Shown in pieces: positions 19,986 through 38,908 of a stretch of 64,000 nucleotides of DNA. The first letter of the stretch is position 1. Each line of letters begins with the position of its first letter. The stretch lies in sequence record ON529858.1. One strand, given 5' to 3'. Both the position numbers and the translations under genes were made by a program. The notes under the pieces were generated by a model. The model was not told where the DNA came from. It worked only from the letters and a program-made list of their open reading frames with translations, and did no database searches.

Positions 19986-22718
19986 ATGTCCGTCTATTCC
20001 CTGGAAGAGCGCGAACGCGCCCGGCGCGCCGTCGCCAACCTGTCCGCCATGCAGACCGAGGCCAAGAAGGCTTCCGAGCGCGGCCTGATCCTGCCCGACA
20101 CCACCGCCCAGGCGATCATCAAGATCACCGGGTCGAGCGAACTGAGCCAGCAGGTGACCGCGCTCGGCCGCATCGGCAACACCGTCCAGACCCAGCACCT
20201 GGAGCGGCTGAAGCCCCTGGCGCACGACGACTTCAACGCCTTCTGCGAATACGTCAACCCGGCCGAGGCGCCGGCGTCGAAGTGGCACATCTACCTGACC
20301 GGCCTGCTTCAGCAGATCGAAGAGGACCCGGACCTGGAGCGGTTCGTGCTGAACTGCCCGCCCGGTCACGCCAAGCCGCTGCACGTCGACACCCCGGTCC
20401 TGATGGGCGACGGGTCCTGGAAGCGTCTGGGCGACATCGTCCCTGGCGATCACGTCGTCTCCGGCGAGGGAAACGTCTGCAAGGTGACCAAGGTCCACGA
20501 GCAGGGCGTCCAACCGATCCTGCGCATCCACACCAAGCACGGCCGCCAGATCGACAGCGCCCCGGACCATTCGTTCCGGGTCGGCTCCACCTGGAAGCAG
20601 GCCGGCGATCTCAAGCCGGGCGATCCGCTCGACGTGGTCGGCTCGCATGACCTGCGCTGGAACGCCTCTGGGGTATCGGATACCCGGATGTTCCGCCTCG
20701 CCGGCTACCTCTCCGCCCAGGGCGGGCGCAGCTTCTTCACCCGCGAGCACAAGGCCGGGCCGAAGACCTACCGCAACGTCCTGCTCTGGACCTCGGACCC
20801 GATCGCGTCCCAGGACATGCAGGCCTGCCTCAACGCTCTGAAGATCGACTTCACCGGCCGGCTGGCGAAGCATGAGAAGGTCTGGCGCCTGCGCCTGAAC
20901 ACGGCCTGGGGCGATGACAACGCCGCCCTGTTCAACATCGACCAGCGGGCCAACGAGCGCCGCATTCCGGACTTCGTCTTCAAGGGCGATCATGACCAGA
21001 TTGCGACCTACCTGTCGACGGTCTTCTCGCTGCTCGCCGAAGCGCCCGACCGCTACAAGCTGCCGCGCATGATCGTTTACGCCAAGTCGCCCGGCTTCGC
21101 TCGCGACCTCCAGCGGCTGCTCGCCGTGGTCGGCGTCCCGTCCTGCGTCAAGACCCCCTCGACCGGGCGCAGCCGCGTCATCCTTACCGGCCCCGAGATC
21201 AGCAGCTACTTCGCCGCCGGCCTGACCTTCCGCTCGCCCTTCGCCGAGCGCGTCGCTGGCCGCATGAAGTCCTACCCGGTAGCGCCGGCCCTACTTGGTG
21301 ATACCGTCCACCGGATCGAGGCGATGGAGCCGGCCGAGTGCCGCTGCCTCACCGTCAAGGGCGATCACACCTTCCTGGCCGAGAACGTGGTCGTCCACAA
21401 CTCGACCTACGCCTCGCGCCTGTTCGTCGCGTGGCGCCTGGGGCGCGACCCCAGCCAGAAGATCATCGGCGGCGGACACAGTCAGCGCTTCGTCGAGAAC
21501 GAGTTCTCCGCCAAGATTCGGAACCTCGTGCGGACGCCCGAATATCAGAACGTCTTCCCCAACGTGAAGATCGACCACGCGACGTCGGCTAAGGACCAGT
21601 GGGCGATCGCCGGACACGGCGGACAGTATGCCGCCAAGGGCGCCGGACAGGCCATCCACGGTCTGCGCGCCAACTTCGTCTGCATCGACGACCCCTACCC
21701 GTCGATCGCAAAGGCTGAGTCTCCGACGTATCGCGAAGAGGTTAGGACGTGGTTCTTTGGAGACGTCGGGTCGCGTTTGCTTCCCTACGCCAAGGTCTTC
21801 CTGATCATGACGCGCTTCCACGAAGAAGACCTGACAGGTTCTATCCAAGAGATGAACCCGAAACTTCCGAGTTACGCTCAATACCACATCGTCGAAGCGC
21901 CTGCACTGTGCTACGACCCGGAAACTGACGTCTTGGGCCGCGACCTCGGAGAAGTTCTTTGGGACTACTATGACCTGGATTATTTTCTGGCGAAGCAGGT
22001 TGAGTGGAAGTATCAAAGATTTGCCTTGGTGTATCAACAGCTTGCGGACGCGGCCTCCGGCGACAACATCGCCAGCAAGTTCCTCACCTATCTGACGCTC
22101 CCTCACCTGGAGCCGAAGGTGCTCGCCGAGCGCCGCGACCAGGGCCACGTCGACGCCCACAACCGGCCGATCCCGGACATCAAGGCCCACTTCAAGCGGG
22201 TCGTGGTGTCGGTCGACGCCGCCATCAAGAACACCGAGCGAGCGGACTATTCCGTCGTCCAGGTGTGGGGCGAGACGTATGACCGCAAGCACTACCTGAT
22301 CTACAACGAGCGCAAGAAGGTCGAACTCCTGGGGCTGATCCCCATGATCGAAAAGGTGGCCGTTCGCTACGCTGCGGACAGCATTTTGGTCGAAGATAAG
22401 GGCAACGGGACCGCCTATATCCAGTCCCGAGGCCAGACGGACAGCCAGCGCCGGCTCGCGCCCTGCCCGATCGTGGCGATCCAGGTCCCGAGCACCCAGG
22501 GCAAGGAGTTCCGCTTCGAAGAGATCACGCCGATGATCGAGAACGGCGAGGTCTTCATCCCGGAGACGGCAAGCTGGAAGGACCTGTTCGTCCGCGAGGT
22601 CGGGCAGTTCCCCGACGGCGCCAACGATGACCAAGTCGACGCCATGACGCAGTATCTCCGCTGGGCCAAGACCAAGCGCACGCGGTTCGGATCGAAGAAG
22701 GTTTCTGGCATGGGCTAG
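19986..22718 (+). CDS. terL: terminase large subunit (intein-containing)
   Basis: Spliced Walker A NCPPGHAK|ST, Walker B VCIDDP, LIMTRFHEEDL, nuclease SVD, LVEDKGNG, DDQVDAMTQ. Confidence 0.93.
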   Translation: MSVYSLEERERARRAVANLSAMQTEAKKASERGLILPDTTAQAIIKITGSSELSQQVTALGRIGNTVQTQHLERLKPLAHDDFNAFCEYVNPAEAPASKWHIYLTGLLQQIEEDPDLERFVLNCPPGHAKPLHVDTPVLMGDGSWKRLGDIVPGDHVVSGEGNVCKVTKVHEQGVQPILRIHTKHGRQIDSAPDHSFRVGSTWKQAGDLKPGDPLDVVGSHDLRWNASGVSDTRMFRLAGYLSAQGGRSFFTREHKAGPKTYRNVLLWTSDPIASQDMQACLNALKIDFTGRLAKHEKVWRLRLNTAWGDDNAALFNIDQRANERRIPDFVFKGDHDQIATYLSTVFSLLAEAPDRYKLPRMIVYAKSPGFARDLQRLLAVVGVPSCVKTPSTGRSRVILTGPEISSYFAAGLTFRSPFAERVAGRMKSYPVAPALLGDTVHRIEAMEPAECRCLTVKGDHTFLAENVVVHNSTYASRLFVAWRLGRDPSQKIIGGGHSQRFVENEFSAKIRNLVRTPEYQNVFPNVKIDHATSAKDQWAIAGHGGQYAAKGAGQAIHGLRANFVCIDDPYPSIAKAESPTYREEVRTWFFGDVGSRLLPYAKVFLIMTRFHEEDLTGSIQEMNPKLPSYAQYHIVEAPALCYDPETDVLGRDLGEVLWDYYDLDYFLAKQVEWKYQRFALVYQQLADAASGDNIASKFLTYLTLPHLEPKVLAERRDQGHVDAHNRPIPDIKAHFKRVVVSVDAAIKNTERADYSVVQVWGETYDRKHYLIYNERKKVELLGLIPMIEKVAVRYAADSILVEDKGNGTAYIQSRGQTDSQRRLAPCPIVAIQVPSTQGKEFRFEEITPMIENGEVFIPETASWKDLFVREVGQFPDGANDDQVDAMTQYLRWAKTKRTRFGSKKVSGMG
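20376..21401 (+). mobile_element. intein (342 aa, residues 131-472) with degenerate LAGLIDADG domain
   Basis: Starts PLHVDTPVLMGDGSWK, block B SAPDH, block F CRCLTV..DHTF, ends VVHN|S; LAGYLSAQG endonuclease-like motif. Confidence 0.9.
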
Positions 22719-22799
22719 GCCGTTAACCATGTTCGCTAACCATGGTCATGATGGCGACAATATGGCGTGTTAACCCTAAGAACCTCCTGGTTAACGGCG

Positions 22800-22921
22800 G
22801 GGACCCTGGCATTTTAACCATGGGGACCCGCCGGAATCAAGGCCAGGGACCCTCCGATTTTCACCTCGGGGACCCAACCAAATCATCACCAGGGACCCTC
22901 CGATTTTCACCTCGGGGACCC
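22800..22921. repeat. array of six GGGACCC boxes at exact 23-bp period
   Basis: Boxes at 22800, 22823, 22846, 22869, 22892, 22915. Confidence 0.92.
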
Positions 22922-22955: not shown

Positions 22956-23156
22956 GTGGATCACGCTCAAATGGCCGCTTATCTGGCTGAACACCACCTC
23001 GGGCTCATCGCCATTGCGATCCTGCTGTTCGGCATCATCGCCGCTCAGGTCCGGGGCTCGATCCACAGCCGGTCCATCGCTCTGCTGAAGGACCGCAACG
23101 AGCGCCTGCTGCGGATCATGGAGCGCATCAGCGGCATCCGGCCCGAGGACGTCTAG
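22956..23156 (+). CDS. small membrane protein
   Basis: One TM segment, GGAG upstream. Confidence 0.55.
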   Translation: MDHAQMAAYLAEHHLGLIAIAILLFGIIAAQVRGSIHSRSIALLKDRNERLLRIMERISGIRPEDV

Positions 23157-23492
23157 CCCGCCGGCTGACGGAGTCATAGGTCACAGCAATCGTGACATCG
23201 GTCAGATATTCCACAGCAAAATCAGCCGCTTAGGCCCAAATCCCATTAAGGAATCATGCAGATGTTGCCTCGTATCATGACTCGCTGCGCTGCAATATGT
23301 GCAGTTTTCTGCCTCAATATCGCGATTTCGAGGGCGATCAAGCCCGAGCCCCAGCCGCGTGTCGATCCTCACCACCAGACCGACGCCGACACCACCCGCC
23401 AACTCTAGTCCCCTGTCAAGACCCCGGCCGACCACCGTGTCATAGGTCCGGGGCATCGTGACAAAATAGTTCAGTTCTCCAAGGATTTCCGT

Positions 23493-23750
23493 ATGTTCTA
23501 TCTGCTCGCCATCTGCGTCGTGATCGCCGCCCTGGGCGGCCTCTGGCTCTACATGAAGGTCCACAAGCGCCGCATCCTGGCCCTGGAGCAGGCCGAGGTC
23601 GACCGGGCCTATGATGAACTGGTCCTGGTCCTGGACCCCAACGCCGCCCACACCACCGCCAAGGCCTTCAACGTCGCCCTCCCGGCCTCGATCGACCGCC
23701 TCCAGGGCCAGCTTCGCGAGGATGGCGTGCCCGATACGACGCCGGCGTGA
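23493..23750 (+). CDS. small membrane-anchored protein
   Basis: N-terminal TM, AAGGA RBS. Confidence 0.6.
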   Translation: MFYLLAICVVIAALGGLWLYMKVHKRRILALEQAEVDRAYDELVLVLDPNAAHTTAKAFNVALPASIDRLQGQLREDGVPDTTPA

Positions 23751-23885
23751 TTCAACGCATCAACGATTCGACGCTTTGACGCTCGAACGCTTTGACGCTG
23801 GAGCGATTCAACGGGCGAGCGATTTGACGCGCCAGCGATTTGACGGTCGCACATTTCATTTCAACGCTGACCCGATTTGACGCGG
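23749..23885. repeat. degenerate 16-bp-period array (core TTYRAC)
   Basis: Cores at 23751, 23767, 23775, 23791, 23807, 23823, 23839, 23860, 23876. Confidence 0.8.
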
Positions 23886-23904
23886 GGTCGTTTTGCGCCG
23901 GTAG

Positions 23905-24127
23905 GGTTAACGCCCGCCGGCGCTGGCGATTCAGGGTTAACGTCCATTTAAGCCTGTCCCCGTTAACCTTCACGCTGTTAAGGTTAATGCTGCCCCAGGC
24001 CGTTAGGGTTAATCCCGTTAAGGTTAACGCCGCGTTAAGGTTACCCGTTAAGGTTAACGCCGCCCGACGGCGCGTTAACCATGAAGATTCATCATGAATC
24101 AGCCTAGTGAACAAACATGGTTAACGG
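23905..24127. repeat. dense TTAAC/GTTAA cluster (CtrA half-site-like)
   Basis: More than ten TTAA within about 220 bp of otherwise GC-rich DNA. Confidence 0.75.
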
Positions 24128-24194
24128 CCCAGGCAAGCCCAAAGGCCCCCAGGCTGGCGCCTGGAGGCCTCAAGGTCGCCGAGGTGCCGCCCGC

Positions 24195-24503
24195 CTAGGC
24201 GGCGAGCGCCACCCCCTGACCCAGGGCCGCCACCTTGTCCGCCAAGGCGGCGACGGCGGGCCTGAGCGGCGCCCGGATCGCCGGGACCGGGAGAACCCAG
24301 CCCCGCCCGGTCAAGAGCCGGTCGAGGGCGCCGAGCGTGGTCGCTTGCGCGCCGGTGAGAACCGGCCGCTTGGCGAGATCGGCCCGGACTTCCAAGAGCC
24401 GTTCGACCGGCACATTCTGGAGGGCGCGGGCCTGGACGGCGACGGCGTGAGCCGGGGCGGCGGTGGCGGCGATGAGGCCGACGGCGATGGCGAGGCGTGT
24501 CAT
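24195..24503 (-). CDS. putative exported protein
   Basis: MTRLAIAVGLIAATAAPAHA signal-peptide-like; GGAG RBS; promoter box at 24564-24578 on minus strand. Confidence 0.65.
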   Translation of the reverse strand: MTRLAIAVGLIAATAAPAHAVAVQARALQNVPVERLLEVRADLAKRPVLTGAQATTLGALDRLLTGRGWVLPVPAIRAPLRPAVAALADKVAALGQGVALAA

Positions 24504-24671
24504 GTGATAGGCTCCTGAGATGCGCCGGGTAAGTCCGGACATCCACAACCTAGCGGGCAGGTCCTAACAAAGTCCTAACGTCCGAATCTTTTCTCGACTG
24601 CCGGCCGTTAACGATTCGTTAGGACTTTGGGGCTAGGGTGGCTTCATCGCAAACCACTGATGGAGTCCCCC

Positions 24672-25541
24672 ATGACCGCCCGCAAGCCCGCCGCCGCCCT
24701 CACAAATCCCTCCCATAAGGTCGTCGGGCCGGACGGGACGGAGTTCTTTCTGATCCGCCGCAAGGGCGCCCGCCTGCGCATCAAAATCCTCTTCGCCGCG
24801 AACGGTTTCGCGGCGGGCGAGGTCAGCGAGGGTTGGGGACCGACCGGCGCCGATGACGTCCTGATGGGGCATTGGACCGGCCCGCTGGGCTTCCACTTCG
24901 GTTACAACGTCATCCGCCAACTGCCCCAGGGCACGCATTGCGTCGAGATCGGTCGCGAGACCGGCGAGGCGAGCCTTCATGACTATCAGACCGACATCCT
25001 GTATAACGGCGAGGTCACCAACTTCCCCCTGGTCCGCGCCGGGTTCAACGTCGGGCGTTTCGGGCGCAAGGGCCTGCCGGTCACCCGGCCCCAGATCGCC
25101 GAGGCCCGCGCCGTCACCCTCGCCCATAAGGCCGCCCTGATCGACGGGACCTATCGCCGCGACGACGGCCCGATGATCAAGAACACGGCGCCGGACGACG
25201 GCGGCTATCGCCCGACCTATGTCCGCGCCGAGGGCTCGCCCGTCCCCGCCGACCTGCTGGCGGAGTTTGTCGCCGACTGTGACCGCCTGCTGGCCTATCT
25301 GGACTTTCTGGAGACCCTGCCGCCCCTGCCCGAGCGTCCCCGGACCTCCCCGGCGCCGGAAACTCAACTGTCCTGGCTGCGCACCCACGCCCGCTATGAG
25401 CGCGGCGAGAACCTGCGCGCCTATCTGCTGGGCGTGCTGGAGTCCGGGATGAATGACCCGGCCGCCTATGAGGCGGCCCGCGCCGCTGACACCCAGGCGC
25501 ACAACGCCCGCGTCGCCCAGGCGAGAAAATCGGCGGCGTAA
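24672..25541 (+). CDS. early hypothetical protein (cassette)
   Basis: GGAG RBS, ATG 24672; TAA stop lies inside the next junction element. Confidence 0.7.
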   Translation: MTARKPAAALTNPSHKVVGPDGTEFFLIRRKGARLRIKILFAANGFAAGEVSEGWGPTGADDVLMGHWTGPLGFHFGYNVIRQLPQGTHCVEIGRETGEASLHDYQTDILYNGEVTNFPLVRAGFNVGRFGRKGLPVTRPQIAEARAVTLAHKAALIDGTYRRDDGPMIKNTAPDDGGYRPTYVRAEGSPVPADLLAEFVADCDRLLAYLDFLETLPPLPERPRTSPAPETQLSWLRTHARYERGENLRAYLLGVLESGMNDPAAYEAARAADTQAHNARVAQARKSAA

Positions 25542-25602
25542 ACCTCTCGTTAAGACCTCCCCCGTATAAGGGGGAGGTCACCACTGAGAAGGAGTTCTCG
25601 CC

Positions 25603-25986
25603 ATGCCTCTCCCCGCCCACCTCTTCGCCTCCGATGACGGCGGCCTGTATGACACCCGCTCGCCGGACTGGTCTAAGGGCAAGCCCCTGCGCACCGGCTA
25701 CCAGGGCGCCGCCGCCCAGATCGAAACCCTCGCCCAGGTCAAGGCCGCGCTGCGCGCCGGGGGCTTCACCTTCCCCGGCGCCTACCCCCTGTATTTCGTC
25801 ACCCGCGACGGCTGCGCCCTCTCGTTTGACGCGGTCCGCGCCGAGTTCGCCGAGGTCTGCGAGGATTTCCTGGCGGACGTTTCCACCGGCTGGCGGATCA
25901 CCGGTTGCACCGTCAACTATGAGGACTCGGACCTGACGTGTGAACACACGGGCGAGAAGATTCCGGCCGCATACAGCGACGAGTAA
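25603..25986 (+). CDS. early hypothetical protein (cassette)
   Basis: AAGGAG RBS; FPGAYPLYFVTRDG...VNYED motif typical of phage hypotheticals. Confidence 0.75.
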   Translation: MPLPAHLFASDDGGLYDTRSPDWSKGKPLRTGYQGAAAQIETLAQVKAALRAGGFTFPGAYPLYFVTRDGCALSFDAVRAEFAEVCEDFLADVSTGWRITGCTVNYEDSDLTCEHTGEKIPAAYSDE

Positions 25987-26049
25987 CGATCCGTTAAGAC
26001 CTCCCCCGTATAAGGGGGAGGTCACCACCGGCAAGAGAAGGAACCCCGA

Positions 26050-26610
26050 ATGCCCGAGACCGTCACCCAGGCCGAGGCCGCCACCGTTCCCGAATACGCG
26101 GAACACGCTGAGCCGCCCGCCTACGCCGTCGCCGTCTGGACTGATGACGTGATCACCAATCACGGCGGCGACCTGCCCCTGTGGGGCCTGGACGTGCCCG
26201 TGCCCGCCATCGGCGCCGACATCGTCGTGACGATCAACCGTTGCGGCCTCGCCTACGTCACCGGCTATTTCGTGCAAGATGGCTGGCTGGGCGTGCTCTG
26301 CACCCTGCGCAACCCGCCGGAATGGCATGTGAAGCAGAACAAGGGTGATCCCAAGGGCCACGCCTTCGCCCCTGAGTTCCGCCCGGCCGTAGCCGCCGAC
26401 CTCGCCGACCCGCCGGTCGAGACGGGCGTCGCCCGCGCCGTCCGGCTGGGCTACACGGTCGAGTCGACCACCGATGAGGCGGACGGCGTGCCGATCTTCC
26501 GCTACGTCCGGCCGAACGGCGAGCCCGATTCCGAATGGCTGTCGAGCCTCGCCAAAATCTGGGAAGGCGCCGGGTCGGATTCTTTTCTTTGGGAAATGGA
26601 CCACGGGTAA
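26050..26610 (+). CDS. early hypothetical protein (cassette)
   Basis: AAGGA RBS; stop inside junction. Confidence 0.7.
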   Translation: MPETVTQAEAATVPEYAEHAEPPAYAVAVWTDDVITNHGGDLPLWGLDVPVPAIGADIVVTINRCGLAYVTGYFVQDGWLGVLCTLRNPPEWHVKQNKGDPKGHAFAPEFRPAVAADLADPPVETGVARAVRLGYTVESTTDEADGVPIFRYVRPNGEPDSEWLSSLAKIWEGAGSDSFLWEMDHG

Positions 26611-26671
26611 CCTCTTGTTAAGACCTTGCCGGTAGGTTGGCTTCATCAACCACCGGCAAGGAGCCAACCCC

Positions 26672-27031
26672 ATGCGATCCACCCTTTCCAATCTGGTCAT
26701 CGCCCTCAAGACCGCGATCGCCGACAACCGCCGCCTGCCCCGCCCGGCCGATCCGGTCGAGGCCGCTGTCATCGACGGCGTCGGCGCGCTTCAGGCCGAG
26801 GCCCTGGAGAAGGCCGAGGGCCTGCTGGCGGGCCTCGCCTATGAGATCGAGATCGCCCAGGCGGGCGCCCTCATCGGCCTGCTCCGCCTCGACACCCCCT
26901 GCCCGATCAAGGCGGACGCCCAGGCCAAAGCCATCCGCGCCGCCCTCCTGCCCGACGGGATCGAGGCGACCCTCTACGCGGTCGAGATCAACAAAAGCCG
27001 GGTGATCGCTGTCGCTCAATACCCCCGGTAA
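26672..27031 (+). CDS. early hypothetical protein (cassette)
   Basis: AAGGAG RBS; stop inside junction. Confidence 0.7.
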   Translation: MRSTLSNLVIALKTAIADNRRLPRPADPVEAAVIDGVGALQAEALEKAEGLLAGLAYEIEIAQAGALIGLLRLDTPCPIKADAQAKAIRAALLPDGIEATLYAVEINKSRVIAVAQYPR

Positions 27032-27096
27032 CGATCCGTTAAGACCTCCCCCGTATAAGGGGGAGGTCACCACCGTTTGAGAAGGAACCCGCCCAG

Positions 27097-27462
27097 ATGA
27101 GCAAGATCACGATTGAGGAAATCGAAAGCTGGACCGCCGAGGTCGAGCGCCCGCGCCAGACGCTGGAGGTCATTTTCCAAACGCTGGGCTATGACAACGG
27201 GACCAAACGAGTCGACGCCTATGTGATCGTCAAGCGCCCAGGCGGCTACGGTCGCGAGGCGGGCGTCGCCCGTGTCGTCCACGCCAGCGGCTGCTACACC
27301 TACGGGCTGGCCCTGATGTCGCTGGAGCGCCAAATGCGCGCCGCCCGCTTCGCCCCCGCCGCCCAGGCCCTGGTCGAGGGCTTCGCCGCCCAGGCCCGGC
27401 GCCAGGGGATGGACCGAACCGAGTTTCCGAAAAGCGTCACCCTCATTCCGACCGAGCGGTAA
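27097..27462 (+). CDS. early hypothetical protein (cassette)
   Basis: AAGGA RBS; stop inside junction. Confidence 0.7.
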   Translation: MSKITIEEIESWTAEVERPRQTLEVIFQTLGYDNGTKRVDAYVIVKRPGGYGREAGVARVVHASGCYTYGLALMSLERQMRAARFAPAAQALVEGFAAQARRQGMDRTEFPKSVTLIPTER

Positions 27463-27524
27463 CGGTCTGTTAAGATTTGGCCTGTAGGGTCTGATCATCA
27501 ACCCCGGACAAGGAGTCCCCGCCC

Positions 27525-27818
27525 ATGACTAAGCCCGCCAAGCCCCGCAAGCTGACCCGCGCCGAACTGGCCCGCAAGGTGCTCGAACTGGAGGGACAAC
27601 TGGCGTCGTCCTATCACTTCGCCACCCTCGAACTGCACAAGGCGGGCGACAACCTCATGGCGTCCGGCGTGCTCATCTCCCTGACCGCCCTAGGCGGGCG
27701 CGAGATCATCAAGCCCGTGGTGATCCGCGACGGCCTGAGCGCCGCCACCATCGCCGCCCTGCGCGCCGATATGGTGCGCAGCTATGAACTGGCGACCTCT
27801 TTTAAGCCCAAGGCGTAA
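27525..27818 (+). CDS. early hypothetical protein (cassette)
   Basis: AAGGAG RBS; stop inside junction. Confidence 0.7.
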   Translation: MTKPAKPRKLTRAELARKVLELEGQLASSYHFATLELHKAGDNLMASGVLISLTALGGREIIKPVVIRDGLSAATIAALRADMVRSYELATSFKPKA

Positions 27819-27880
27819 CCCTTCGTTAAGACCTCGCCTGTAGGGTGAGGTCATCAACCGCTGGACAAGGAGTCCCCCGA

Positions 27881-28435
27881 ATGCCGACCGCCAAACAAAC
27901 CGCCCAGGCCATCGCCCTGACCCCCTCGACGGGCGAGGCCGTGGCGATGATCCTTCACGCGCTCGACATCGGCCGTCTGTATTTTCAGCGCGAGGTCGAG
28001 GCGACCGACTCGCTGTCGAATAAGGAACTGGCCCAGGTCCGGCTCGACACATTCGAACGCGCCTCGATCATCGCCCGTGAATCCGGCGTGCTCATCACCG
28101 CTGAAGGCGAGAGCGTCGCGGCCATTCTCGACGATCTTTTCAACGCCATGCCTACCCCCGGAACCGACAAGCTGTCAAAGCCGTGGAACCGCGCGCTGAA
28201 GCAAGCCCGCCGCCCGCGCTACCGCTTCAAAGCCGGGACCGGGAGCGCCACCGTGACCGATACGCTTAAGGGCGTCTCCGCCACCACCCGCCACCCCGGA
28301 CCGGTCGCGGCGGCGCGCGAGGCCTTCGCCAATACCGACTCGGGCGCCCACGTCACCCCGGCCGGGGTCGGGGTCTGCGGACTGGATGAGGACAAGGCCC
28401 GCTCATTCCTCGCCACCGCTGAGCGCGGCCGGTGA
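27881..28435 (+). CDS. early hypothetical protein
   Basis: AAGGAG RBS, ATG 27881. Confidence 0.7.
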   Translation: MPTAKQTAQAIALTPSTGEAVAMILHALDIGRLYFQREVEATDSLSNKELAQVRLDTFERASIIARESGVLITAEGESVAAILDDLFNAMPTPGTDKLSKPWNRALKQARRPRYRFKAGTGSATVTDTLKGVSATTRHPGPVAAAREAFANTDSGAHVTPAGVGVCGLDEDKARSFLATAERGR

Positions 28436-28728
28436 GGGCCGGTCAAGTCAAGGTCGCGGTCCCCCTCTCGTTTGGGGCCTGCGGCTATGTCTGGCGCCCG
28501 AACAAAACCGCCGCCGGGATGACGAAAACCGACGCCCGGCGCGGTCAACGGCGCGGCCCAGGCGAGGGCGTCGGGCTCAAGCTGGCGGTGCGCGGGACCA
28601 CCGACGCCCTGGATATGGCCCTGGTTTTCTGCATCACCCGCCGAAACCCGGACTATCTGTGTCTGAACAAATCCGGCAAGGCCCGGCTGGCGCGCCTGAG
28701 AAAACGCCGCGCCGTAACCCTTCGTTAA
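28432..28728 (+). CDS. early hypothetical basic protein
   Basis: GTGA overlap; stop is the second half-site of the junction. Confidence 0.55.
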   Translation: MRAGQVKVAVPLSFGACGYVWRPNKTAAGMTKTDARRGQRRGPGEGVGLKLAVRGTTDALDMALVFCITRRNPDYLCLNKSGKARLARLRKRRAVTLR

Positions 28729-28778
28729 GACCTTGCCGGTAGGTTGGGCTCATCAACCACCGGCAAGGAGCCGCGCCG

Positions 28779-28895
28779 ATGAAACCGACCCGCAACCCCG
28801 CCGCGAAGGCCCTGGCCTCCGCCGCCTACCGTCAACAGGTCGTCAAGCCCCGCAAGGGTCGCGGCGCCTACTCTCGAAAGGGAAACCGCCCATGA
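28779..28895 (+). CDS. ArfA-like 38-aa peptide (not in ORF track)
   Basis: MKPTRNPAAKALASAAYRQQVVKPRKGRGAYSRKGNRP; own promoter, AAGGAG RBS, ATGA overlap with next gene. Confidence 0.75.
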   Translation: MKPTRNPAAKALASAAYRQQVVKPRKGRGAYSRKGNRP

Positions 28896-29374
28896 CCGCC
28901 CTCGACACTGTCAACACCTCGTTTTTCTTCGTCGTCCTGCGCGACGCCCAGGGCGTCCACCTCGCCACCGAAACCGTCTGGTGCCCGCCCGGCTCGAAAC
29001 CCGCCGACATCATCGGCGACGCCTGCTCTTTCTTCCAAGTGGACGAAAACGGCGCCTATGACGACGACGTGATCGCCGCCGGTGTCATCGACCTGTTCGG
29101 CCCCTTCGATCAAGGTTCGGCCCTGACCGTCAAGGTCGCCCGCCCGGACGGCGACGACTTCGCCGACTTCCAGATCGTCCCCGAGACCACCGCCGAACCT
29201 TTCGACTATATGGGCCAGATCATGGCCTATGAGGCGGGCGAACTGGACGACGACGACGTCGACACCCTGTTCCAATATCTGGTCGACACCGGCCTCGCCT
29301 GGAGCCTGCAAGGCGCCTATGGGCGCACCGCCCAGGCCCTGGCCGCCGCCGGTCGAATCACCCTCCCCGAGTAA
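28892..29374 (+). CDS. early hypothetical protein (two-domain)
   Basis: ATG 28892; C-terminal IMAYEAGEL...FQYLVDTGLAWSLQGAYGR domain common in phages. Confidence 0.7.
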   Translation: MTALDTVNTSFFFVVLRDAQGVHLATETVWCPPGSKPADIIGDACSFFQVDENGAYDDDVIAAGVIDLFGPFDQGSALTVKVARPDGDDFADFQIVPETTAEPFDYMGQIMAYEAGELDDDDVDTLFQYLVDTGLAWSLQGAYGRTAQALAAAGRITLPE

Positions 29375-29435
29375 CGAACCGTTAAGACCTCCCCCGTATA
29401 AGGGGGAGGTCACCCACCGAGAAGGAACCCAGATC

Positions 29436-30152
29436 ATGGCCGCTGGAGCCACAAAAGAACAGATTGCCCGCGCCACCCGCACGGCGCTGCAAAAGATCGC
29501 CAAGGCGTCCGGCGGGACCTATACCGCCGCGACCACAAAGACCCGCGCTTTCGCCAGCGGGACCACGAACGACGGCCTGCGCTGGATCGCCAACGTCGGG
29601 AGCGGCAACGCCTCGAACGGTCAAACCTTCCTGAGCCTGAACATTTCCGTCAACGGATCGTTTGGCGAAGCCATCACCCGCACCGGCTATTTTGAAGGCG
29701 ACGTGACCGTCGCGGGCGTCTGCCTGTTGTTCCGCCTGATCAACGGCTATCCCCTCGAACTGGACGGCTCGCCCGGCGACTTCCGCCTGCTGCTGGCGGC
29801 GCCCGGCGTCTCGAACTGGTTCGCCGACCGCTACGCCCTGACCTTCCGGGGCGACGGTTTCGACGTGCTGGACAAGGCCCGCAAAATGGTTCGGACCTTC
29901 ACCGCCGCCGAGGCCGATCAAGAGGCCCGCCGCCTCGCCCTGGCCTTCCGTTCGGACCTGCGCGCCGAGACGATGCCGACCCACTATGACGCGGAAACCT
30001 ACGCCCGCGTCCGGGCTTCTGAGGCCGCCTTGTCGCAACGTCGCGGCGCCGGGCTGGACGCATGGGGCGACGACCGCCTCGCCGTCTATCCCGACGGCTG
30101 GACCGGCGCCCTGACCGACTGGAGGCTGGCCCATGGCCCCCGTGAGAACTGA
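29436..30152 (+). CDS. early hypothetical protein
   Basis: AAGGA RBS, ATG 29436. Confidence 0.7.
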   Translation: MAAGATKEQIARATRTALQKIAKASGGTYTAATTKTRAFASGTTNDGLRWIANVGSGNASNGQTFLSLNISVNGSFGEAITRTGYFEGDVTVAGVCLLFRLINGYPLELDGSPGDFRLLLAAPGVSNWFADRYALTFRGDGFDVLDKARKMVRTFTAAEADQEARRLALAFRSDLRAETMPTHYDAETYARVRASEAALSQRRGAGLDAWGDDRLAVYPDGWTGALTDWRLAHGPREN

Positions 30153-30309
30153 CGGCCTCGTGCCGCTGGAGGTCTGCGCCTCCGCCCTCGAACTCGCCAA
30201 GCGCGATGTCGAGGCGCGGCTGGCGCGTGACCCGAACGCCCACGACGCCGACGTCCTGCGCAGCCAGCGCGACACCTACGCCCGCGCCCTGAGCGTGGCC
30301 TATTCCTGA
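30133..30309 (+). CDS. early hypothetical protein, 58 aa (not in ORF track)
   Basis: GGAGG RBS; MAPVRTDGLVPLEVC... Confidence 0.5.
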   Translation: MAPVRTDGLVPLEVCASALELAKRDVEARLARDPNAHDADVLRSQRDTYARALSVAYS

Positions 30310-30398
30310 AAAAATCTCGACTGCCGGCGCTGCGGTAACTTCTCGTTAAGACCTCTCCCGTATGGTCTCAATATCAACCCCGCCAAGGAGACCACCGA

Positions 30399-30839
30399 AT
30401 GCCCCGCATCACTCAAGCCGCCGCCTTCGTCGCCGCCCACCTGCCCGCGCTGCTGGGCTATGTCGAGGCCGACAAGACCGCCACCCCGCACAAGCCCGGC
30501 CCGGCCTTCACGGGGTCGAGCAACTGCCAAGCCAATATCGAGCGCGACTATGCCCGCCGCAACGGCGGCCATTGGTTCGACAAAGAGACCTTCCGGTTTT
30601 TCCGGACCACCATCACGGCCGGTTTCTGGGACGTGCCCGAGGCGGGCGTCACCCTCTTTGTGACCGGCGAGCGCGACACCTGCCAGCCGGGCCGGAGCCG
30701 GGCCTATACGGTGCGCGCCTACTTCTGGAACGGCGCCGACATCGAAACGATTGGCCCGTTCAACGAAACGAGCCAGCGCGTGGCGGAGCAAGCCGTGCCC
30801 CTCTTCGTCGCCGCCCTGAAAGAAAGGGCGGCGGCGTGA
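30399..30839 (+). CDS. early hypothetical protein
   Basis: AAGGAG RBS; GHWFDKETFRFF motif typical of phage hypotheticals. Confidence 0.75.
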   Translation: MPRITQAAAFVAAHLPALLGYVEADKTATPHKPGPAFTGSSNCQANIERDYARRNGGHWFDKETFRFFRTTITAGFWDVPEAGVTLFVTGERDTCQPGRSRAYTVRAYFWNGADIETIGPFNETSQRVAEQAVPLFVAALKERAAA

Positions 30840-31051
30840 GCCGGGTCCTGGTCGGGACCGTCCGCGTCCTGGACGGTCAAACCGTCTGCGTCCGCCCTGA
30901 CGGCCGCGTGCATGAAGTCGGCGGCAAGGTCTCGACCTTCCCCGTTTTCGGCGGCCTGCGCCCCTATGATGAGGGCAAGCAGATTTGGCGCGTGGCGGGC
31001 GTGACCCAGATGGAAAACGACTCGCAGCGCGACCGCCGCCTGGGCCGCTAA
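30836..31051 (+). CDS. early hypothetical protein
   Basis: GTGA overlap; TAA stop inside junction. Confidence 0.6.
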   Translation: MSRVLVGTVRVLDGQTVCVRPDGRVHEVGGKVSTFPVFGGLRPYDEGKQIWRVAGVTQMENDSQRDRRLGR

Positions 31052-31113
31052 CCCTTCGTTAAGACCTCGCCTGTAGGGTGAGGTCATCAACCACCGGACA
31101 AGGAGTCCACGCC

Positions 31114-31581
31114 ATGACCACCAAACTGATCGAGGTTCGCGGCCCGACCGCTGAAGAGGCCGCCGCCCTAGGCGGCGACGTGGTCTTCGTCCGCCGCGAC
31201 CGCGCGGGCGTCGAGACCAAAATCCACGCCAGCGTGTCGCACGAGTCGTGGTCGCAATGGGGCGCCGACCGTGACCTGCTGGGCGAAAATCAAGAGGCCG
31301 TCGAAAGCTGGCGGCGCGGCCTGGACGACGTTCTAGGGCTGATCGACGAATCGGACTTCGCCGACGAACCCGAAGAGGCCGAGTCCGGCGATTGGGAAGT
31401 CGGCGACCGGGCCTATGTGGGCGCCGAGGGTGACCGGGGCGAGATCATCGAGATCATCACCACCGGCCTGCCCGACTCGGCGCGAGGCCGCGCCCGCGTC
31501 AAGATGCAACTCGACTATTGGCGCGTCGGCGAACTCTGGGAAGGCTCCATCGACGACATCGACACTCTGGACGACGAGTAA
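31114..31581 (+). CDS. early hypothetical acidic protein
   Basis: AAGGAG RBS; stop inside junction. Confidence 0.7.
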   Translation: MTTKLIEVRGPTAEEAAALGGDVVFVRRDRAGVETKIHASVSHESWSQWGADRDLLGENQEAVESWRRGLDDVLGLIDESDFADEPEEAESGDWEVGDRAYVGAEGDRGEIIEIITTGLPDSARGRARVKMQLDYWRVGELWEGSIDDIDTLDDE

Positions 31582-31642
31582 CGATTTGTTAAGACCTCGC
31601 CCCTAGGGTGAGGTCATCAACCCCGGACAAGGAGTCCCCCAG

Positions 31643-32308
31643 ATGACGACCACCCCGAACTTCTCCACCCCCTCGCTCGCCGTCGCATTCTTCGCCAGCG
31701 CGGGCGGCGCCGCCTTCCTGAAGGCCGTGCTGGACCTGCGCGCCGCGACCGTCGGCATCGACGACGAACCGGACATTTCGAACGCCCTTGTCATCGAGAT
31801 CGGCGCCGCCAAGAACGCGCTCGACGACGTCATCGGCCTGCTGGCCGAGGCGGGCGTGCAAATCGTCATCGCCGCCCCCGGCGTCTATGACAACGTGCCG
31901 CAATCCATTCTCGACGCGGTTTTCAACCCGCCGAAGGAACTGGCCGCCGCTGTCGCCGACATCAACGCCGGGGCCGCCCTCAAGACCACGCTGGAGCCGG
32001 GCGACATCGGATTCGCCCAGGCGTCCGGCTACGGCATCGGCCCGGCGAGCGAGACCGGCGACGGCCGCGAAGGGTTCTGTTTCTTCGCCCCTGACGGCCG
32101 CCGCTCCGCCGCCTTCACCCTGCAACTGACGGCATGGCTTGCGGCCGTGCGCGAGGTCGAGGGCCTGCCCTACGCCGTCGGCGAGCACGGCCTGCCGCCG
32201 CTCGCCCGCTTCGCCACCGAGGCCGAGGGCGCCGCCTATATCGACACGCTGGACCCCGTCAAGCGAGAGGCTGGCGGCTACTATCTGGACGGCCCGGCGG
32301 ATGACTAA
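31643..32308 (+). CDS. early hypothetical protein
   Basis: AAGGAG RBS. Confidence 0.7.
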   Translation: MTTTPNFSTPSLAVAFFASAGGAAFLKAVLDLRAATVGIDDEPDISNALVIEIGAAKNALDDVIGLLAEAGVQIVIAAPGVYDNVPQSILDAVFNPPKELAAAVADINAGAALKTTLEPGDIGFAQASGYGIGPASETGDGREGFCFFAPDGRRSAAFTLQLTAWLAAVREVEGLPYAVGEHGLPPLARFATEAEGAAYIDTLDPVKREAGGYYLDGPADD

Positions 32309-32516
32309 GCCCCGCCGCTCCCCCAAGCGCCGCCTCGCCACCTACACGGCGAGGAACGCCCCGCCGCGAGGCAACGCCCGGTCCTATCTTCTGGACTGCC
32401 TGCGCCTCGCCGCTGACTACCGCCGCCGAGGCGTTCCGGCCGTCGCCCGCCTTGTCCTGGCGAATGTCCGCGCCGACCGCCTCGCCCAGCCCGGCCGTCT
32501 CTCGCTCCCCGGCTAA
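32301..32516 (+). CDS. early hypothetical Arg-rich protein
   Basis: ATG 32301 overlapping previous stop. Confidence 0.5.
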   Translation: MTKPRRSPKRRLATYTARNAPPRGNARSYLLDCLRLAADYRRRGVPAVARLVLANVRADRLAQPGRLSLPG

Positions 32517-32712
32517 GTCACGATTCCACCCACCTATGACATCTAGCCTTGTATTCCCCGGAACAAACAAGCATAGATGTCATTATTCCCCGGCGAGATG
32601 ACTCGTCTCATGACACAGGAGGCCTAGCACATTCATTTAGTTGAGGGTTTTATCAAGGGTTCCGCCCTGATCGCTGCACTCGTTTTTCTCATGCTTTTCT
32701 TCTAGCGCGAGA

Positions 32713-32834
32713 GGGACCCACGAAAATCTAGGCAAGGGACCCGTCGGATTCGTCCGGCGGGTCCCTTCGCATTTCAGGGCAGGGACCCGCGAGATTTAAG
32801 GGCAGGGACCCGCGCGTTTTCATGGCCGGGACCC
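32713..32834. repeat. second array of six GGGWCCC boxes at exact 23-bp period
   Basis: Boxes at 32713, 32736, 32759 (GGGTCCC), 32782, 32805, 32828. Confidence 0.92.
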
Positions 32835-33013
32835 TAGGGAATCCTCCCCAGGATTGGAGGCCGTTTTCCGGCCCGCTGAGCGCCTTGCCGCACCTTCCGG
32901 ACCCAGGGCCTGGACCGACCCAGGCCCAGGCCCTGGCGGGCCTCCCAGGCGTTTACGATTTGGTAAGACCTGCCCGCTAGGATCACGTCATCAACCGCAC
33001 AAGGAATCCCCCC

Positions 33014-33631
33014 ATGACCTTCCCCGTCTACACCGCGACCGCCGCCTCTGTCGGCGCCGCCCATATCCTGCGCGACGGTCAAGCCGTGCTCTACGTCAAG
33101 ACGATGCGCGACCCGTCCGACTCGACCCGGCCCCTGCTGTCGGATGACGCCCTAGGCGACTTGGTCGAGGCGACGGCCGAGCGCCTGACCGGCGCCACCC
33201 TGGACCGCGCCGACGCCGTCCTGCTGGCGCGCGTGCTCGACCCGGCATTCGCCACCACCGACGCCGACCTCGCCCAGGTCCGGGCCGCGCTGAACTTCGC
33301 CCTGCAAGACGCCCCAGGCGAGAAGCAGGCCGCCCGGCGGCGGCTGGCCGAGATCACCCCCGAGCAGCGCGCCCGGATCGACCGGGACGTCGCCCAGGCC
33401 CAGGGCGTCGCCACCTATCAGGGCTACGCCTGCCTCGCCTATGTGGACCGGATCGGCGGCGTGGTCATCAAGGACTCGACCGACGGGCGCGACGCCTACG
33501 TCCAACCCGGCGACGACGCCGCCGCCCTGCGGGCTGAACTGGAGGCGGCCGAGGGCGTGCCCGAGCCGACCACCTCCGCCGCCCTAGGCCCGCACGACCT
33601 GATCGAGAACATCCTGCGAGAATACTTCTAG
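33014..33631 (+). CDS. early hypothetical protein
   Basis: AAGGA RBS, junction promoter at 32952. Confidence 0.7.
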   Translation: MTFPVYTATAASVGAAHILRDGQAVLYVKTMRDPSDSTRPLLSDDALGDLVEATAERLTGATLDRADAVLLARVLDPAFATTDADLAQVRAALNFALQDAPGEKQAARRRLAEITPEQRARIDRDVAQAQGVATYQGYACLAYVDRIGGVVIKDSTDGRDAYVQPGDDAAALRAELEAAEGVPEPTTSAALGPHDLIENILREYF

Positions 33632-33688
33632 GCCGTTCACACTTCGTTAGCACCTCCCGGCTATGGTCGGGAGGTCGAACGGAAAAGC

Positions 33689-33830
33689 GCTTTGATCGCC
33701 CAGGGATTTGATCGCCGAGCGATTTGATCGCCCAGGGATTTGATCGCCGAGCGATTTAACCAGCGGGCGATTTAACCAGGGAGCGATTCAACAACCGCCC
33801 GTTTCATTTTGACCGGGAGCCGATTTGATC
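33689..33830. repeat. second 16-bp-period array
   Basis: Cores at 33691, 33707, 33723, 33739, 33755, 33771, 33787, 33808, 33824. Confidence 0.85.
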
Positions 33831-33835
33831 CTGGT

Positions 33836-33970
33836 TAGTTAACGGCGTGTTAACGAACATGAACGCGATATAGTTAACGAACATTAACCATGATGTGGTT
33901 AACGCAGCATTAACCTTCACGCCGTTAAGGTTAACGGCGCGTTAATGATGAACGAATATGGTTAACGCGA
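33836..33970. repeat. second dense TTAAC cluster
   Basis: Shares TTAACCTTCACGCYGTTAAGGTTAA with 23963 (copy at 33910). Confidence 0.75.
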
Positions 33971-34143
33971 TAGCCGTCCCCCGCCGTTGTGCCCCTTAAG
34001 TTCGAAGAGCCCGGCCTAGTCTCAAGAGTAGCACGCCGAATCCTAACAAGTCACTAACAAAATCAAGAAAAGTTCTTTTCGGGCGTTAATCTCTTCTTAA
34101 GGACTCGGGCCTAGATTGGCCTAGTCAACAACGGAGCAACCCA

Positions 34144-34467: not shown

Positions 34468-34535
34468 CAGGATCGGCGCCCGGCTCAGGCCGGGCGCCAG
34501 ACCCTGGCCCCATAGTTAACGAAATCGGCTTTTCT

Positions 34536-34642
34536 GTTAACCATGTTTGGTCACCATGAAGAAACATGGTTAACCGCGTTAACCATGTTTGGTCACTATG
34601 AACAAACATGGTTAACGCGATAGTCGATCCCTCCCTAAGACT
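34536..34642 (-). ncRNA. candidate small hairpin RNA (two tandem 39-bp palindromic units)
   Basis: Units 34536-34574 and 34578-34616 downstream of minus-strand promoter box 34660; no ORF. Confidence 0.4.
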
Positions 34643-34706
34643 ACTCTAATCTCAAAAAGTTAACAGGAGGTTAACGCCGGGAGAAAAATCTCCCGGCGCC
34701 GACCTG

Positions 34707-38609: not shown

Positions 38610-38643
38610 CCCTCCCCTGTCCCAAAAAAGGACAGGGGAGGGA
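38610..38643. terminator. hairpin ending the early cassette region
   Basis: CCCTCCCCTGTCC-CAAAAAA-GGACAGGGGAGGG. Confidence 0.6.
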
Positions 38644-38908
38644 CCCAAGGCCCCCCCTTTGTTAACCACGTTTTGGGCGCCCCCGTGCGTATGGCGATGT
38701 AATCGAAAAGCGCCAACTCGTTAATCCCAGGAAAAAATGAGCCGAGGCGTTTTCCCAGGAACCGAGGGGGTAGGGTCGAAAAGGCAGTCCCAGATTTTTT
38801 TGAATCGGTGCGTCGATGTCTGTCAAGGAAAGTGCTAGGCCGACACTGGCACAGTTTGCTCCCAACGTGATAGTTGGCTATATAGCTGCTCTGGAATGGG
38901 AGTCCCAC

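Follow-up and report, generated by a model that had tools for sequence, protein, structure and literature searches.

Two non-coding arrays of short boxes, repeated every 16 bp, raise the question of what function they serve in the genome that carries them. They lie in the window, i.e., the whole 64,000-nucleotide stretch of record ON529858.1 that was analyzed, which was found to derive from the giant phiCbK-like Brevundimonas phage vB_BgoS-Bajun, the full record of which comprises 207 kb.

Anatomy of the two 16-bp box arrays

Using the core motif TT[TC][GA]A[CT], array 1 (23749..23883, plus strand) was resolved into nine head-to-tail units with the core GATTTGACGC / GATTCAACG. Five cores at 23775, 23791, 23807, 23823, and 23839 follow each other in 16-bp steps, two more are reached by steps of 21 bp (23860) and 16 bp (23876), and two extra units, at 23751 and 23767, are shifted out of register by 8 bp. 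Array 2 (33686..33832, plus strand) likewise has nine units and is built on a 32-bp super-unit. Its seven cores from 33691 to 33787 are spaced by exactly 16 bp and are followed by steps of 21 bp (33808) and 16 bp (33824), giving exact runs of five then two cores in array 1 and of seven then two in array 2. The unit order in array 2 is GATTTGATCGCC (four times), GATTTAACC (twice), GATTCAAC, a doubled box at about 33801-33810, and GATTTGATCC. The single 21-bp step of each array contains TTTCATTT, with TTTCAT at 23854 and 33802, and is produced by a doubled box, which in array 1 is CATTTCATTT at 23853-23862 within one unit. Measured at their 3' parts, the two arrays lie 9,948 bp apart, and in this respect, as in the shared irregularity, the sequence-only reading of the locus was correct.

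On the plus strand, chains of cores at exact 16-bp steps reached lengths of seven and five, while no other period between 10 and 30 bp gave chains longer than two. Among 200 shuffles that preserved the dinucleotide composition, no chain exceeded two cores, the maximum being one in 185 shuffles and two in 15. Both arrays were also detected by Tandem Repeats Finder, which gave the 32-bp super-unit of array 2 at 97% match, and a natural variant of array 2 from the metagenome relatives lacks exactly 32 bp, i.e., one super-unit. The box arrays far exceed what chance would give, and their polarity is strict; that same reading had rightly taken them to be real.

Several identities of the arrays were considered and rejected. 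The units are not CtrA boxes, as their core is TTGAC/TTGAT at 16-bp spacing and TTAA-N7-TTAA occurs only in the flanking clusters. Four units of array 1 and most units of Marchewka, phiCbK, Rogue, and L014 contain TTGACGC, which we take to be the -35 consensus of Caulobacter sigma-73 promoters, reportedly given as TTGACGS by Malakooti, Wang and Ely in 1995. Array 2 has TTGATCG and no TTGACGC, and the arrays of Lacusarx, XM05, and L032 are devoid of TTGAC. Despite the -35 match, no -10 element follows the units or the last unit, and the units were rejected as sigma-73 promoters; a generic sigma-70 scan gave no match in the arrays either. A partition centromere of the ParA/ParB type, as distinct from the ParM and TubZ types, was dismissed after a search for the cognate genes, which found neither ParB_N nor an AAA_31 ParA in Bajun, Rogue, Marchewka, Colossus, and Lacusarx, while the control genomes were positive. 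Searches of the arrays for an Rfam family and for a conserved hairpin found neither, which favors a role at the DNA level.

A three-part module inside the predicted terminal repeat

Each box array is the middle element of a polar, three-part non-coding module, in which a GGGACCC array with a period of 23-25 bp is followed by variable filler, the box array, and a CtrA-box cluster. We found no publication on either array, and the three-part module has not been described before. All elements of the two Bajun modules given below are on the plus strand.

Block 1 opens the early-gene region, which corresponds to the long direct terminal repeat of the mapped relatives, and begins 82 bp past the terL stop with G array 1 (22800..22921), in which GGGACCC occurs six times at exactly 23 bp and the spacers carry GATTTTC/GAAATC-type boxes. 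It is preceded by a small cluster of three GTTAAC boxes (22722..22795), one of which is GTTAACCATG; a small GTTAAC cluster is also found 5' of the G array in phiCbK, Marchewka, Lacusarx, L032, and XM05. The filler of block 1 (22956..23750) contains three small ORFs (22956-23156, 23256-23408, and 23493-23750) with no Pfam or PHROG match, the second and third of which are each preceded by a GTCATAGGT-N9-CGTGAC element. CtrA-box cluster 1 (23906..24125) comprises seven GTTAAC boxes, GTTAAGGTTAAC units, and two full TTAA-N7-TTAA sites, and 3' of it lies the 3' end of the minus-strand gene 24195-24503.

Module 2 lies ahead of a further group of early genes. Its G array 2 (32713..32834) again has six GGGWCCC boxes at exactly 23 bp, five of them GGGACCC and one GGGTCCC, and no further GGGWCCC array is present in the 207-kb record. 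The filler (33014..33631) holds one orphan ORF of 205 aa, for which searches for a family and for Atlas relatives found none. CtrA-box cluster 2 (33838..33966) contains six GTTAAC boxes and three full TTAA-N7-TTAA sites, followed by an A+T-richer stretch and then the plus-strand gene 34144-34467. Canonical CtrA sites directly adjoin each box array; in the window, TTAA-N7-TTAA was observed 10 times against 0.03 expected, and half of these sites fall within the two clusters.

The G array and the box array are separated, start to start, by 951 bp in block 1 and 978 bp in block 2, close to the 0.9 kb first proposed. Only the arrays align between the blocks, at about 71-72% over 80-100 bp, and the intervening sequence and ORFs are unrelated, which bears out the earlier claim that the architecture is kept and the content is not. 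GGGTC, on the minus strand of the G box, was considered as a T7-type priming site, but a search for a T7-type primase zinc ribbon found none and gave the idea no support.

The modules lie downstream of the terminase genes, i.e., those of the small subunit (19092..19982, plus strand; PHROG phrog_11494, E 2e-61) and of the intein-containing large subunit (19986..22718, plus strand; Pfam Terminase_6C and Intein_splicing, terL in the record annotation). In a phiCbK-type phage, the left terminus was mapped to terL codon 652 (Gill 2012). The left end of the direct terminal repeat of Bajun is predicted at the same codon, between 21939 and 21940, and the window from 21940 onwards aligns with position 1 of CcrRogue. 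The predicted right end is the plus-strand homologue of the phiCbK/Rogue right terminus (38640..38684), identified by alignment to the mapped terminus and consisting of one GGGACCC, 14 bp, GTTAACCA, 8 bp, and then a G+C run; this motif occurs once in the 207-kb record. At the mapped right terminus of phiCbK and Rogue, one GGGACCC with a CtrA half-site is found 44 bp from the end, on the inner side, and the Bajun homologue has it in the same position. All 16 copies of the early-junction motif GTTAAGA[CT] fall between 25549 and 38299, and the gene at 35410-35838 is homologous to phiCbK gp018, which lies within the repeat of phiCbK. By homology, the Bajun repeat is predicted to span from about 21940 to about 38684 (∼16.7 kb). 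With these predicted ends, both blocks would be internal to the repeat and neither would be a genome end. The sequence-only reading had interpreted the arrays as the second component of a duplicated terminus or replication module; what stands is that they are the second component of a duplicated non-coding module, while the terminus does not agree with the predicted internal position of the blocks.

Conservation of the module in related phages

The layout was found 3' of terL in phiCbK, Rogue, Karma, BL10, Colossus, CcrPW, CcrBL9, CcrSC, Marchewka, Gurke, and Lacusarx, as well as in Erythrobacter phage XM05 and in metagenome contigs with a TerL only 33-52% identical. The module is thus common to all phiCbK-like relatives examined, with hosts including Caulobacter, Brevundimonas, Sphingobium, and Erythrobacter, and was not found in the more distant DSS3P8. 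Conservation of the period in related genomes, on which the original proposal had been staked beforehand, was confirmed together with that of the layout. Location within the repeat is seen directly in phiCbK, Rogue, Karma, BL10, CcrSC, CcrBL9, CcrPW, and Colossus, the repeats of which are annotated or mapped. The module starts from 6 bp to 2.5 kb past the terL stop in the relatives, and the distance from G array to box array stays within 0.70-1.18 kb across 18 modules despite unrelated filler.

Across the relatives, the box unit ranges from 16 to 36 bp, and the core ATTT(T)G/C box and the doubled CATTTCATTT box are kept. A doubled CATTT(T)CATTT(T) stands at the 3' end of both Bajun arrays and of those of Rogue, phiCbK, CcrBL9, CcrSC, CcrPW, Colossus, and Lacusarx, and in the longer units of 22-36 bp it is present in every unit. 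The recurrence of the doubled box shows that the 21-bp irregularity is not noise. The box arrays differ between clades in motif and period, whereas the G box is invariant; the two arrays therefore probably have different binders. In natural metagenome relatives, too, the G boxes are kept and the spacers change.

More than one module per genome was found only in Brevundimonas phages, in three records of 207-348 kb (Bajun two, Gurke two, Marchewka three). All seven modules point the same way as terL and the early genes, and their internal order is identical. Since the modules of Marchewka and Gurke are 19.0, 13.4, and 20.8 kb apart, the 9.9-kb offset in Bajun is probably not the repeat length.

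Possible functions and comparison with known systems

Our tentative reading is that the box array serves as a protein-binding platform which, together with CtrA, switches the early region. Each array would present nine head-to-tail putative binding boxes with the core (C)GATTTGAY, along which a sequence-specific protein, either phage-encoded or a factor conserved among alphaproteobacterial hosts, might polymerize. As steps of 16 bp (1.5 turns) would place neighboring protomers on opposite faces, the working unit would be a 32-bp pair. The filament would abut CtrA~P on the adjoining boxes, could possibly bridge to the GGGACCC array 1 kb upstream, and would form with CtrA~P an on/off platform that ties early transcription, which depends on CtrA, to the cell-cycle state of the host. 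Mascolo et al. 2022 (PMC9437464) showed that CtrA binds phiCbK terminal-repeat promoters and is needed for their activity. MucR, a silencer of the host that acts alongside CtrA at G1 promoters (Fumeaux 2014), prefers A+T-rich sites with T-A steps; the boxes, in contrast, have no T-A steps, which counts against the platform. In addition, the CtrA cluster of block 1 faces the 3' end of a minus-strand gene in Bajun, Rogue, Marchewka, Gurke, and Colossus, and the lack of a co-directional gene fits poorly with pure promoter control. The invariant position after terL and the single GGGACCC 44 bp inside the right terminus point to packaging rather than to a platform.

It is less probable, and in our view unlikely, that the box array is a replication origin, in which iterons or a priming platform would be used by a phage or host initiator and the CtrA boxes would silence initiation in swarmer cells. 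CtrA silences replication at the Caulobacter chromosomal origin, and polar, non-coding tandem repeats of variable copy number beside sites for this silencer would suit such a role, as would the position of block 1 between convergent genes. Classical iterons recur about every two helical turns, with the initiators on one face, whereas a period of exactly 16 bp alternates faces and the relatives range from 16 to 36 bp, departing from two-turn phasing (about 21-23 bp). The G+C content of the window is lowest at 22-24 kb (0.606) and 34-36 kb (0.618), a mild local minimum, but the cumulative GC skew has no inflection. Allowing one mismatch, the blocks contain no TTATCCACA-like DnaA box except for one chance overlap with a GTTAA box, and no recognizable initiator gene was found beside them, although the neighboring ORFs, for which Pfam, PHROG, and Atlas gave no match, may include an orphan initiator. 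Mohammadi and Ely 2025 postulate an origin, not yet known, that would allow episomal replication of these phages. The multiple modules of the three Brevundimonas phages would agree with the origin and, if it is real, would represent extra origins.

We consider it quite unlikely that the module is a packaging or concatemer-processing signal recognized by the terminase small subunit, with the GGGACCC array in the lead and the box array in an accessory role. This would account for the adjacency to the terminase genes in Bajun block 1, for the G array coming after the end of terL in all relatives examined, even at 33% TerL identity, and for the GGGACCC and CtrA half-site near the right terminus; the box CGTTTCATTT also weakly resembles the lambda cosB R sites CGTTTCC(G/T)TTCT. 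However, a packaging site is expected once per unit genome, and Bajun and Gurke have two modules each, Marchewka three. The mapped left terminus and the G array are anywhere from 355 to 1944 bp apart, and in Bajun both the G array (22800) and the box array (23749), the latter ∼1.8 kb from the predicted left end, lie beyond the ≤200 bp expected. The probably different binders of the two arrays argue against a single recognition site as well.

An injection-stop or anchoring region as in T5 is very improbable. If the right end enters first, the module would lie at the inner end of the first-entering repeat and pause entry during early expression. The architecture parallels the untranslated repeat regions in the T5 terminal repeats (Davison preprint, bioRxiv 10.1101/866236), and both repeats of about 10 kb and homologues of T5 A1 are known from phiCbK-like phages (Gill 2012). 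Yet two-step transfer has never been reported for phiCbK-like phages, the A1 homologues belong to the replication module outside the terminal repeat, and two or three modules would imply several stops. Functionless, neutral VNTR-like tandem repeats are hardly credible: short perfect TTGACGC-containing tandem repeats are common in unrelated bacteria and the array copy number varies, but phages of four host genera, with a TerL identity down to about 33-40%, have the position, polarity, order, and doubled terminal box in common, while the flanks are not kept.

Returning to the platform that we favor, its CtrA part has a precedent. The GTTAAC clusters described here correspond to the CtrA-box clusters reported in the same genome region, the terminal repeats or gap regions of pilus- and flagellum-dependent alphaproteobacterial phages, by Mascolo et al. 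2022 (PMC9437464). The passages of that work that were searched deal with CtrA sites only and contain no mention of 16-bp or 22-36-bp box arrays, of GGGACCC arrays, or of a fixed order and spacing.

Iteron origins (lambda ori, P4 ori/crr, plasmid iterons) resemble the Bajun arrays as tandem direct repeats in non-coding DNA, P4 additionally in having two separated cis elements, and the CtrA-gated Caulobacter origin shares the CtrA sites; the Bajun arrays differ in their 16-bp period and in having neither DnaA boxes nor a recognizable initiator gene nearby. The lambda cosB R sites, the SPP1 pacL/pacR boxes, and the P1 pac hexamers are, like the module, short repeated boxes by the terminase genes and close to the packaging start. 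Such sites are found no more than about 200 bp from the cut, and each genome has one, whereas Bajun has two 16-bp arrays, at about 1.8 kb from the predicted end, and their motif varies between clades.

The T5 untranslated regions keep a conserved repeat order amid poorly conserved ORFs and contain DnaA boxes, nine direct repeats, and paired elements at variable distance (Davison, bioRxiv 10.1101/866236). Like them, the module is a non-coding part of a direct terminal repeat of considerable length (about 10 kb), in Bajun by homology, in which small early ORFs are numerous and poorly conserved, and the order of its repeats is kept while the ORFs are not. Both combine direct-repeat arrays (the DRD repeat of T5 is present in nine copies) with clustered boxes for a master regulator of the host, and in both a sub-element occurs in pairs at variable distance. 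The two are unrelated in sequence: T5 has DnaA boxes, inverted repeats, and palindromes and its candidate stop at the inner end of the left repeat, whereas the module has CtrA boxes and strictly head-to-tail arrays and lies 0.4-2 kb from the left end.

Paired box arrays in Bajun

The record of Brevundimonas phage vB_BgoS-Bajun (ON529858.1; 207,261 bp, circular as deposited), a member of the Dolichocephalovirinae (phiCbK-like giant siphophages), is 100% identical to the window, in which each position equals the record position minus 62,000. The genes for the small and the intein-containing large terminase subunit lie at 19092-19982 and 19986-22718, respectively. As the sequence-only reading had described, the cores of a first box array (23749-23883) follow one another at exact 16-bp steps from 23775 to 23839 and then at steps of 21 and 16 bp, and a second array (33686-33832) has seven cores at 16-bp steps from 33691 to 33787, again followed by steps of 21 and 16 bp. 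Both 21-bp steps contain TTTCAT, and the 3' parts of the two arrays are offset by 9,948 bp. Array 1 additionally holds two units (23751 and 23767) in a register shifted by 8 bp, and array 2 shows a 32-bp super-unit with a 97% match. Core chains of 7 and 5 were seen only with a period of 16 and only on the plus strand, and the longest core chain never exceeded 2 in 200 dinucleotide-preserving shuffles.

Each box array is preceded by a GGGWCCC (G) array (22800-22921 in block 1, 32713-32834 in block 2), and both G arrays consist of six copies spaced exactly 23 bp apart, with no others in the whole record. The proposal that the non-coding architecture is kept while the content differs was borne out: the two blocks align only in their arrays, and filler and ORFs are unrelated. 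In metagenome contigs that differ little from Bajun, the G boxes are retained and the spacers altered. A contig from an urban metagenome, almost identical to Bajun elsewhere, is short of exactly 32 bp, i.e., two 16-bp units, in array 2 (33685-33718). In a second metagenome contig, no G box of G array 2 is lost, because the changes are confined to spacer differences and 1-nt indels, one of them bordering on the first G box.

The 64-kb window is devoid of GCCWGGC (∼40 expected), GGCWGCC (∼18 expected) and ACCWGGT (∼16 expected), while CCCWGGG (23) and TCCWGGA (32) occur at normal counts. This looks like restriction-site avoidance. GCCWGGC and ACCWGGT are also missing from the phiCbK, Rogue and Colossus loci; Marchewka and Gurke have both.

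A polar module downstream of terL

The same polar order was found 3' of terL in every relative examined, often with a small GTTAAC cluster first: a G array is followed by variable filler of 0.70-1.18 kb, a second-box array and a dense GTTAAC/GTTAAGGTTAAC cluster. This order is present in phiCbK, Rogue, Karma, BL10, Colossus, CcrPW, CcrBL9, CcrSC, Marchewka and Gurke, in Sphingobium phage Lacusarx and Erythrobacter phage XM05, and in metagenome contigs with only 33-52% TerL identity to Bajun. The layout is absent from the more distant Roseobacter phage DSS3P8. In the 152-kb phage XM05 (locus L188, 4735-6150, after terL), a CtrA-box cluster, four loosely spaced GGGWCCC boxes, ∼0.8 kb, a box array of GGCCGTTTT/GGCCATTTT with an 18-21 bp period and a further CtrA-box cluster follow one another. 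The G arrays of the relatives contain 5-9 GGGACCC boxes 22-26 bp apart; the box is invariant, its central base being nearly always A on the terL strand. No other non-coding feature of the phiCbK-like group is as conserved as this module.

The Caulobacter phages checked carry one module per repeat copy. Among the Brevundimonas phages, Bajun has two modules, Gurke two complete ones (loci L006 and L186; record ∼314.4 and 293.7 kb) and Marchewka three complete ones (loci L005, L064 and L187; record ∼88.2, 69.2 and 55.7 kb), all in uniform orientation. Every one of them comprises a G array, a gap of ∼1-1.2 kb and a box array; GTTAA boxes follow them all, and a dense cluster follows some only. Since each of the three phages carries two to three modules, the paired architecture with different content that had been noticed in Bajun is a recurrent property of the Brevundimonas branch.

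The second array varies between clades, whereas the G box does not. Bajun, the phiCbK group, loci L014 and L035 and module 1 of Marchewka have 16-bp units with TTGACGC, and the TTGACGC units of Gurke module 1 measure 15-17 bp. Colossus, CcrPW, CcrBL9 and CcrSC have 27-29-bp units with TTGACGC and CCATTTC; the extra modules of Marchewka and Gurke have 21-36-bp units, and locus L015 has 26-bp units. Units of 18-22 bp with GGCCATTTT(G/C) and without TTGAC are present in Lacusarx, locus L032 and XM05. Across the second arrays a core (C/G)(C/G)ATTT(T)(G/C) is kept, of which the Bajun version is GCGATTTG, together with a 3'-terminal doubled box, CATTT(T)CATTT(T); what had been read as a 21-bp irregularity is exactly this doubled box. 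Similar boxes (GATTTTC, GAAATTC, CCATTTTC) fill the G-array spacers. A G-array spacer of Marchewka module 3 carries CCATTTTC, the second-array box of Lacusarx. When 185,579 bacterial and archaeal genomes were scanned for three TTGACGC boxes spaced 16 bp apart, more than 120 matches were obtained, but the result was uninformative: every match inspected was a perfect tandem repeat of a generic kind, with a period of 8 or 16 bp, and came from an unrelated taxon.

CtrA clusters and the predicted terminal repeat

Canonical CtrA boxes are found in the flanking GTTAAC clusters (23906-24125 and 33838-33966). The window has 10 TTAA-N7-TTAA sites (0.03 expected), all of them between 23.9 and 37.0 kb and half of them in the two clusters. 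GTTAACCATG, present in the CtrA-box clusters, is the SciP/CtrA half-site consensus (Fumeaux et al., 2014). According to Mascolo et al. (2022; PMC9437464), the terminal repeats of the phiCbK group are enriched in CtrA sites, and the phiCbK gp005 and gp018 promoters are bound by CtrA and need it for activity. In five phages (Bajun, Rogue, Marchewka, Gurke and Colossus), a minus-strand gene has its 3' end directed towards the block 1 CtrA cluster. The box array and the CtrA cluster there occupy a convergent zone, which is what one would expect of a cis-acting DNA site.

The minus-strand gene after block 1 of Bajun (24195-24503) encodes 102 aa with a clear signal peptide; a minus-strand gene likewise follows module 1 in Rogue, Marchewka, Gurke and Colossus. 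No relationship was detectable between the Bajun protein and its Rogue counterpart (gp004). Near the downstream end of the block 1 CtrA-box cluster, a perfect palindrome, GATTCATCATGAATC (24091-24105), contains two GANTC (CcrM) sites. A 24-bp element, GTCATAGGT-N9-CGTGAC, lies on the plus strand at 23177-23200 and 23439-23462, upstream of the small ORFs at 23256 and 23493 within block 1, and recurs inverted at 32519-32543, a short way upstream of block 2; it resembles a promoter or an operator. Between 25542 and 31642, eleven early-gene junctions of ∼50-89 bp (9 of the 11 at 61-65 bp) share GTTAAGACC, a hairpin with the loop GTATAAG or GTAGGGT, and AAGGAG; each is a cassette-like promoter/RBS junction.

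The ends of phiCbK were mapped via coverage and terminal ligation, which placed the left end at terL codon 652 and the right end in an intergenic region, with repeats of 9,946-10,321 bp (Gill et al., 2012). Position 1 of CcrRogue aligns to 21940 of the window, and alignment identified 38640-38684 as the homologue of the mapped Rogue/phiCbK right-terminus sequence. This stretch consists of one GGGACCC, ∼14 bp, GTTAACCA, ∼8 bp and a G+C run, a motif found once in the whole Bajun record. The early-gene junction motif GTTAAGA[CT] occurs 16 times, always within 25549-38299, and the Bajun gene homologous to gp018, which in phiCbK is part of the repeat, occupies 35410-35838, on the far side of block 2; both are consistent with a right boundary near 38684. 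From the terminus homologies, the range of the junction motif and the position of the gp018 homologue, we predict a Bajun terminal repeat of ∼16.7 kb, from 21940 to ∼38684, that would enclose both blocks and exceed the phiCbK repeat by ∼6.4 kb.

Of the earlier suggestion that the arrays are a component of a duplicated terminus or replication module, the terminus reading is disfavored by this prediction, under which both arrays would fall inside the repeat and not at the genome ends. The 9.9-kb offset resembles the repeat length of phiCbK relatives, probably by coincidence, since the Marchewka modules are 19.0 and 13.4 kb apart and the Gurke modules 20.8 kb. Block 2 as a diverged copy of the whole terminal repeat was rejected: no remnant of terL precedes it, and the genes that come first behind each block are not paralogues.

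Candidate functions of the module

We tentatively favor the reading that the module may be a protein-binding platform that acts jointly with CtrA in switching the early region. MucR and CtrA co-occupy G1 promoters (Fumeaux et al., 2014), which makes MucR attractive as the binder, but the T-A steps for which MucR has a preference are missing from the boxes. The product of ORF 33014-33631 was likewise set aside as a candidate binder, having no family and an Atlas model of low confidence. Most units of Bajun array 1 and of the Caulobacter phages contain TTGACGC, the host -35 consensus; the arrays were nevertheless rejected as promoters, because no -10 follows, and the arrays contain no sigma-70-type match. 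No known RNA family was found between 21 and 40 kb.

A replication origin is a possible but unlikely alternative to the binding platform. An origin of the DnaA-box type was dismissed, as the blocks contain no DnaA boxes, and a ParABS centromere was dismissed since neither ParB_N nor ParA was found in Bajun, Rogue, Marchewka, Colossus or Lacusarx. Nor was a T7-type primase zinc ribbon found that would fit the G box (GGGTC on the minus strand) as a primase site of that type. Rather more doubtful is a cis element that reads the host cell cycle, that is, a CtrA-gated site without a promoter, serving as a replication start or in maintenance, that would be silent in swarmer cells and fire after differentiation, the additional Brevundimonas modules being extra origins; if true, this would account for 'lytic deferment' as well as for stable carriage as an episome. 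We give no better prospects to a packaging or concatemer-processing signal. A T5-like injection stop appears improbable, and neutral repeats are very hard to credit.

No description of either array was found in Gill et al. (2012), the Lacusarx paper, McLaughlin (2023), Mohammadi and Ely (2025) or the searched passages of Mascolo et al. (2022; PMC9437464), nor through a text search of the literature. Four points are new here: a box array is conserved as the second element, the 21-bp irregularity is homologous across relatives, the module spacing is fixed, and Brevundimonas phages carry several modules each. In the Caulobacter cell-cycle model phiCbK is the classic phage, yet to our knowledge none of its cis-acting DNA signals is known, whether for packaging, for the replication origin, for early control or for episomal carriage. 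The module occurs in phages that infect at least four genera of alphaproteobacteria and lies in the terminal repeat, adjoining experimentally validated CtrA-controlled promoters. The identity of its binder would reveal how a long-terminal-repeat phage organizes the first minutes of infection and possibly how early infection is coupled to the host cell cycle. Among described systems, the untranslated repeat regions of the T5 terminal repeat come closest to the module in architecture; we claim neither a sequence relationship nor membership in a family.
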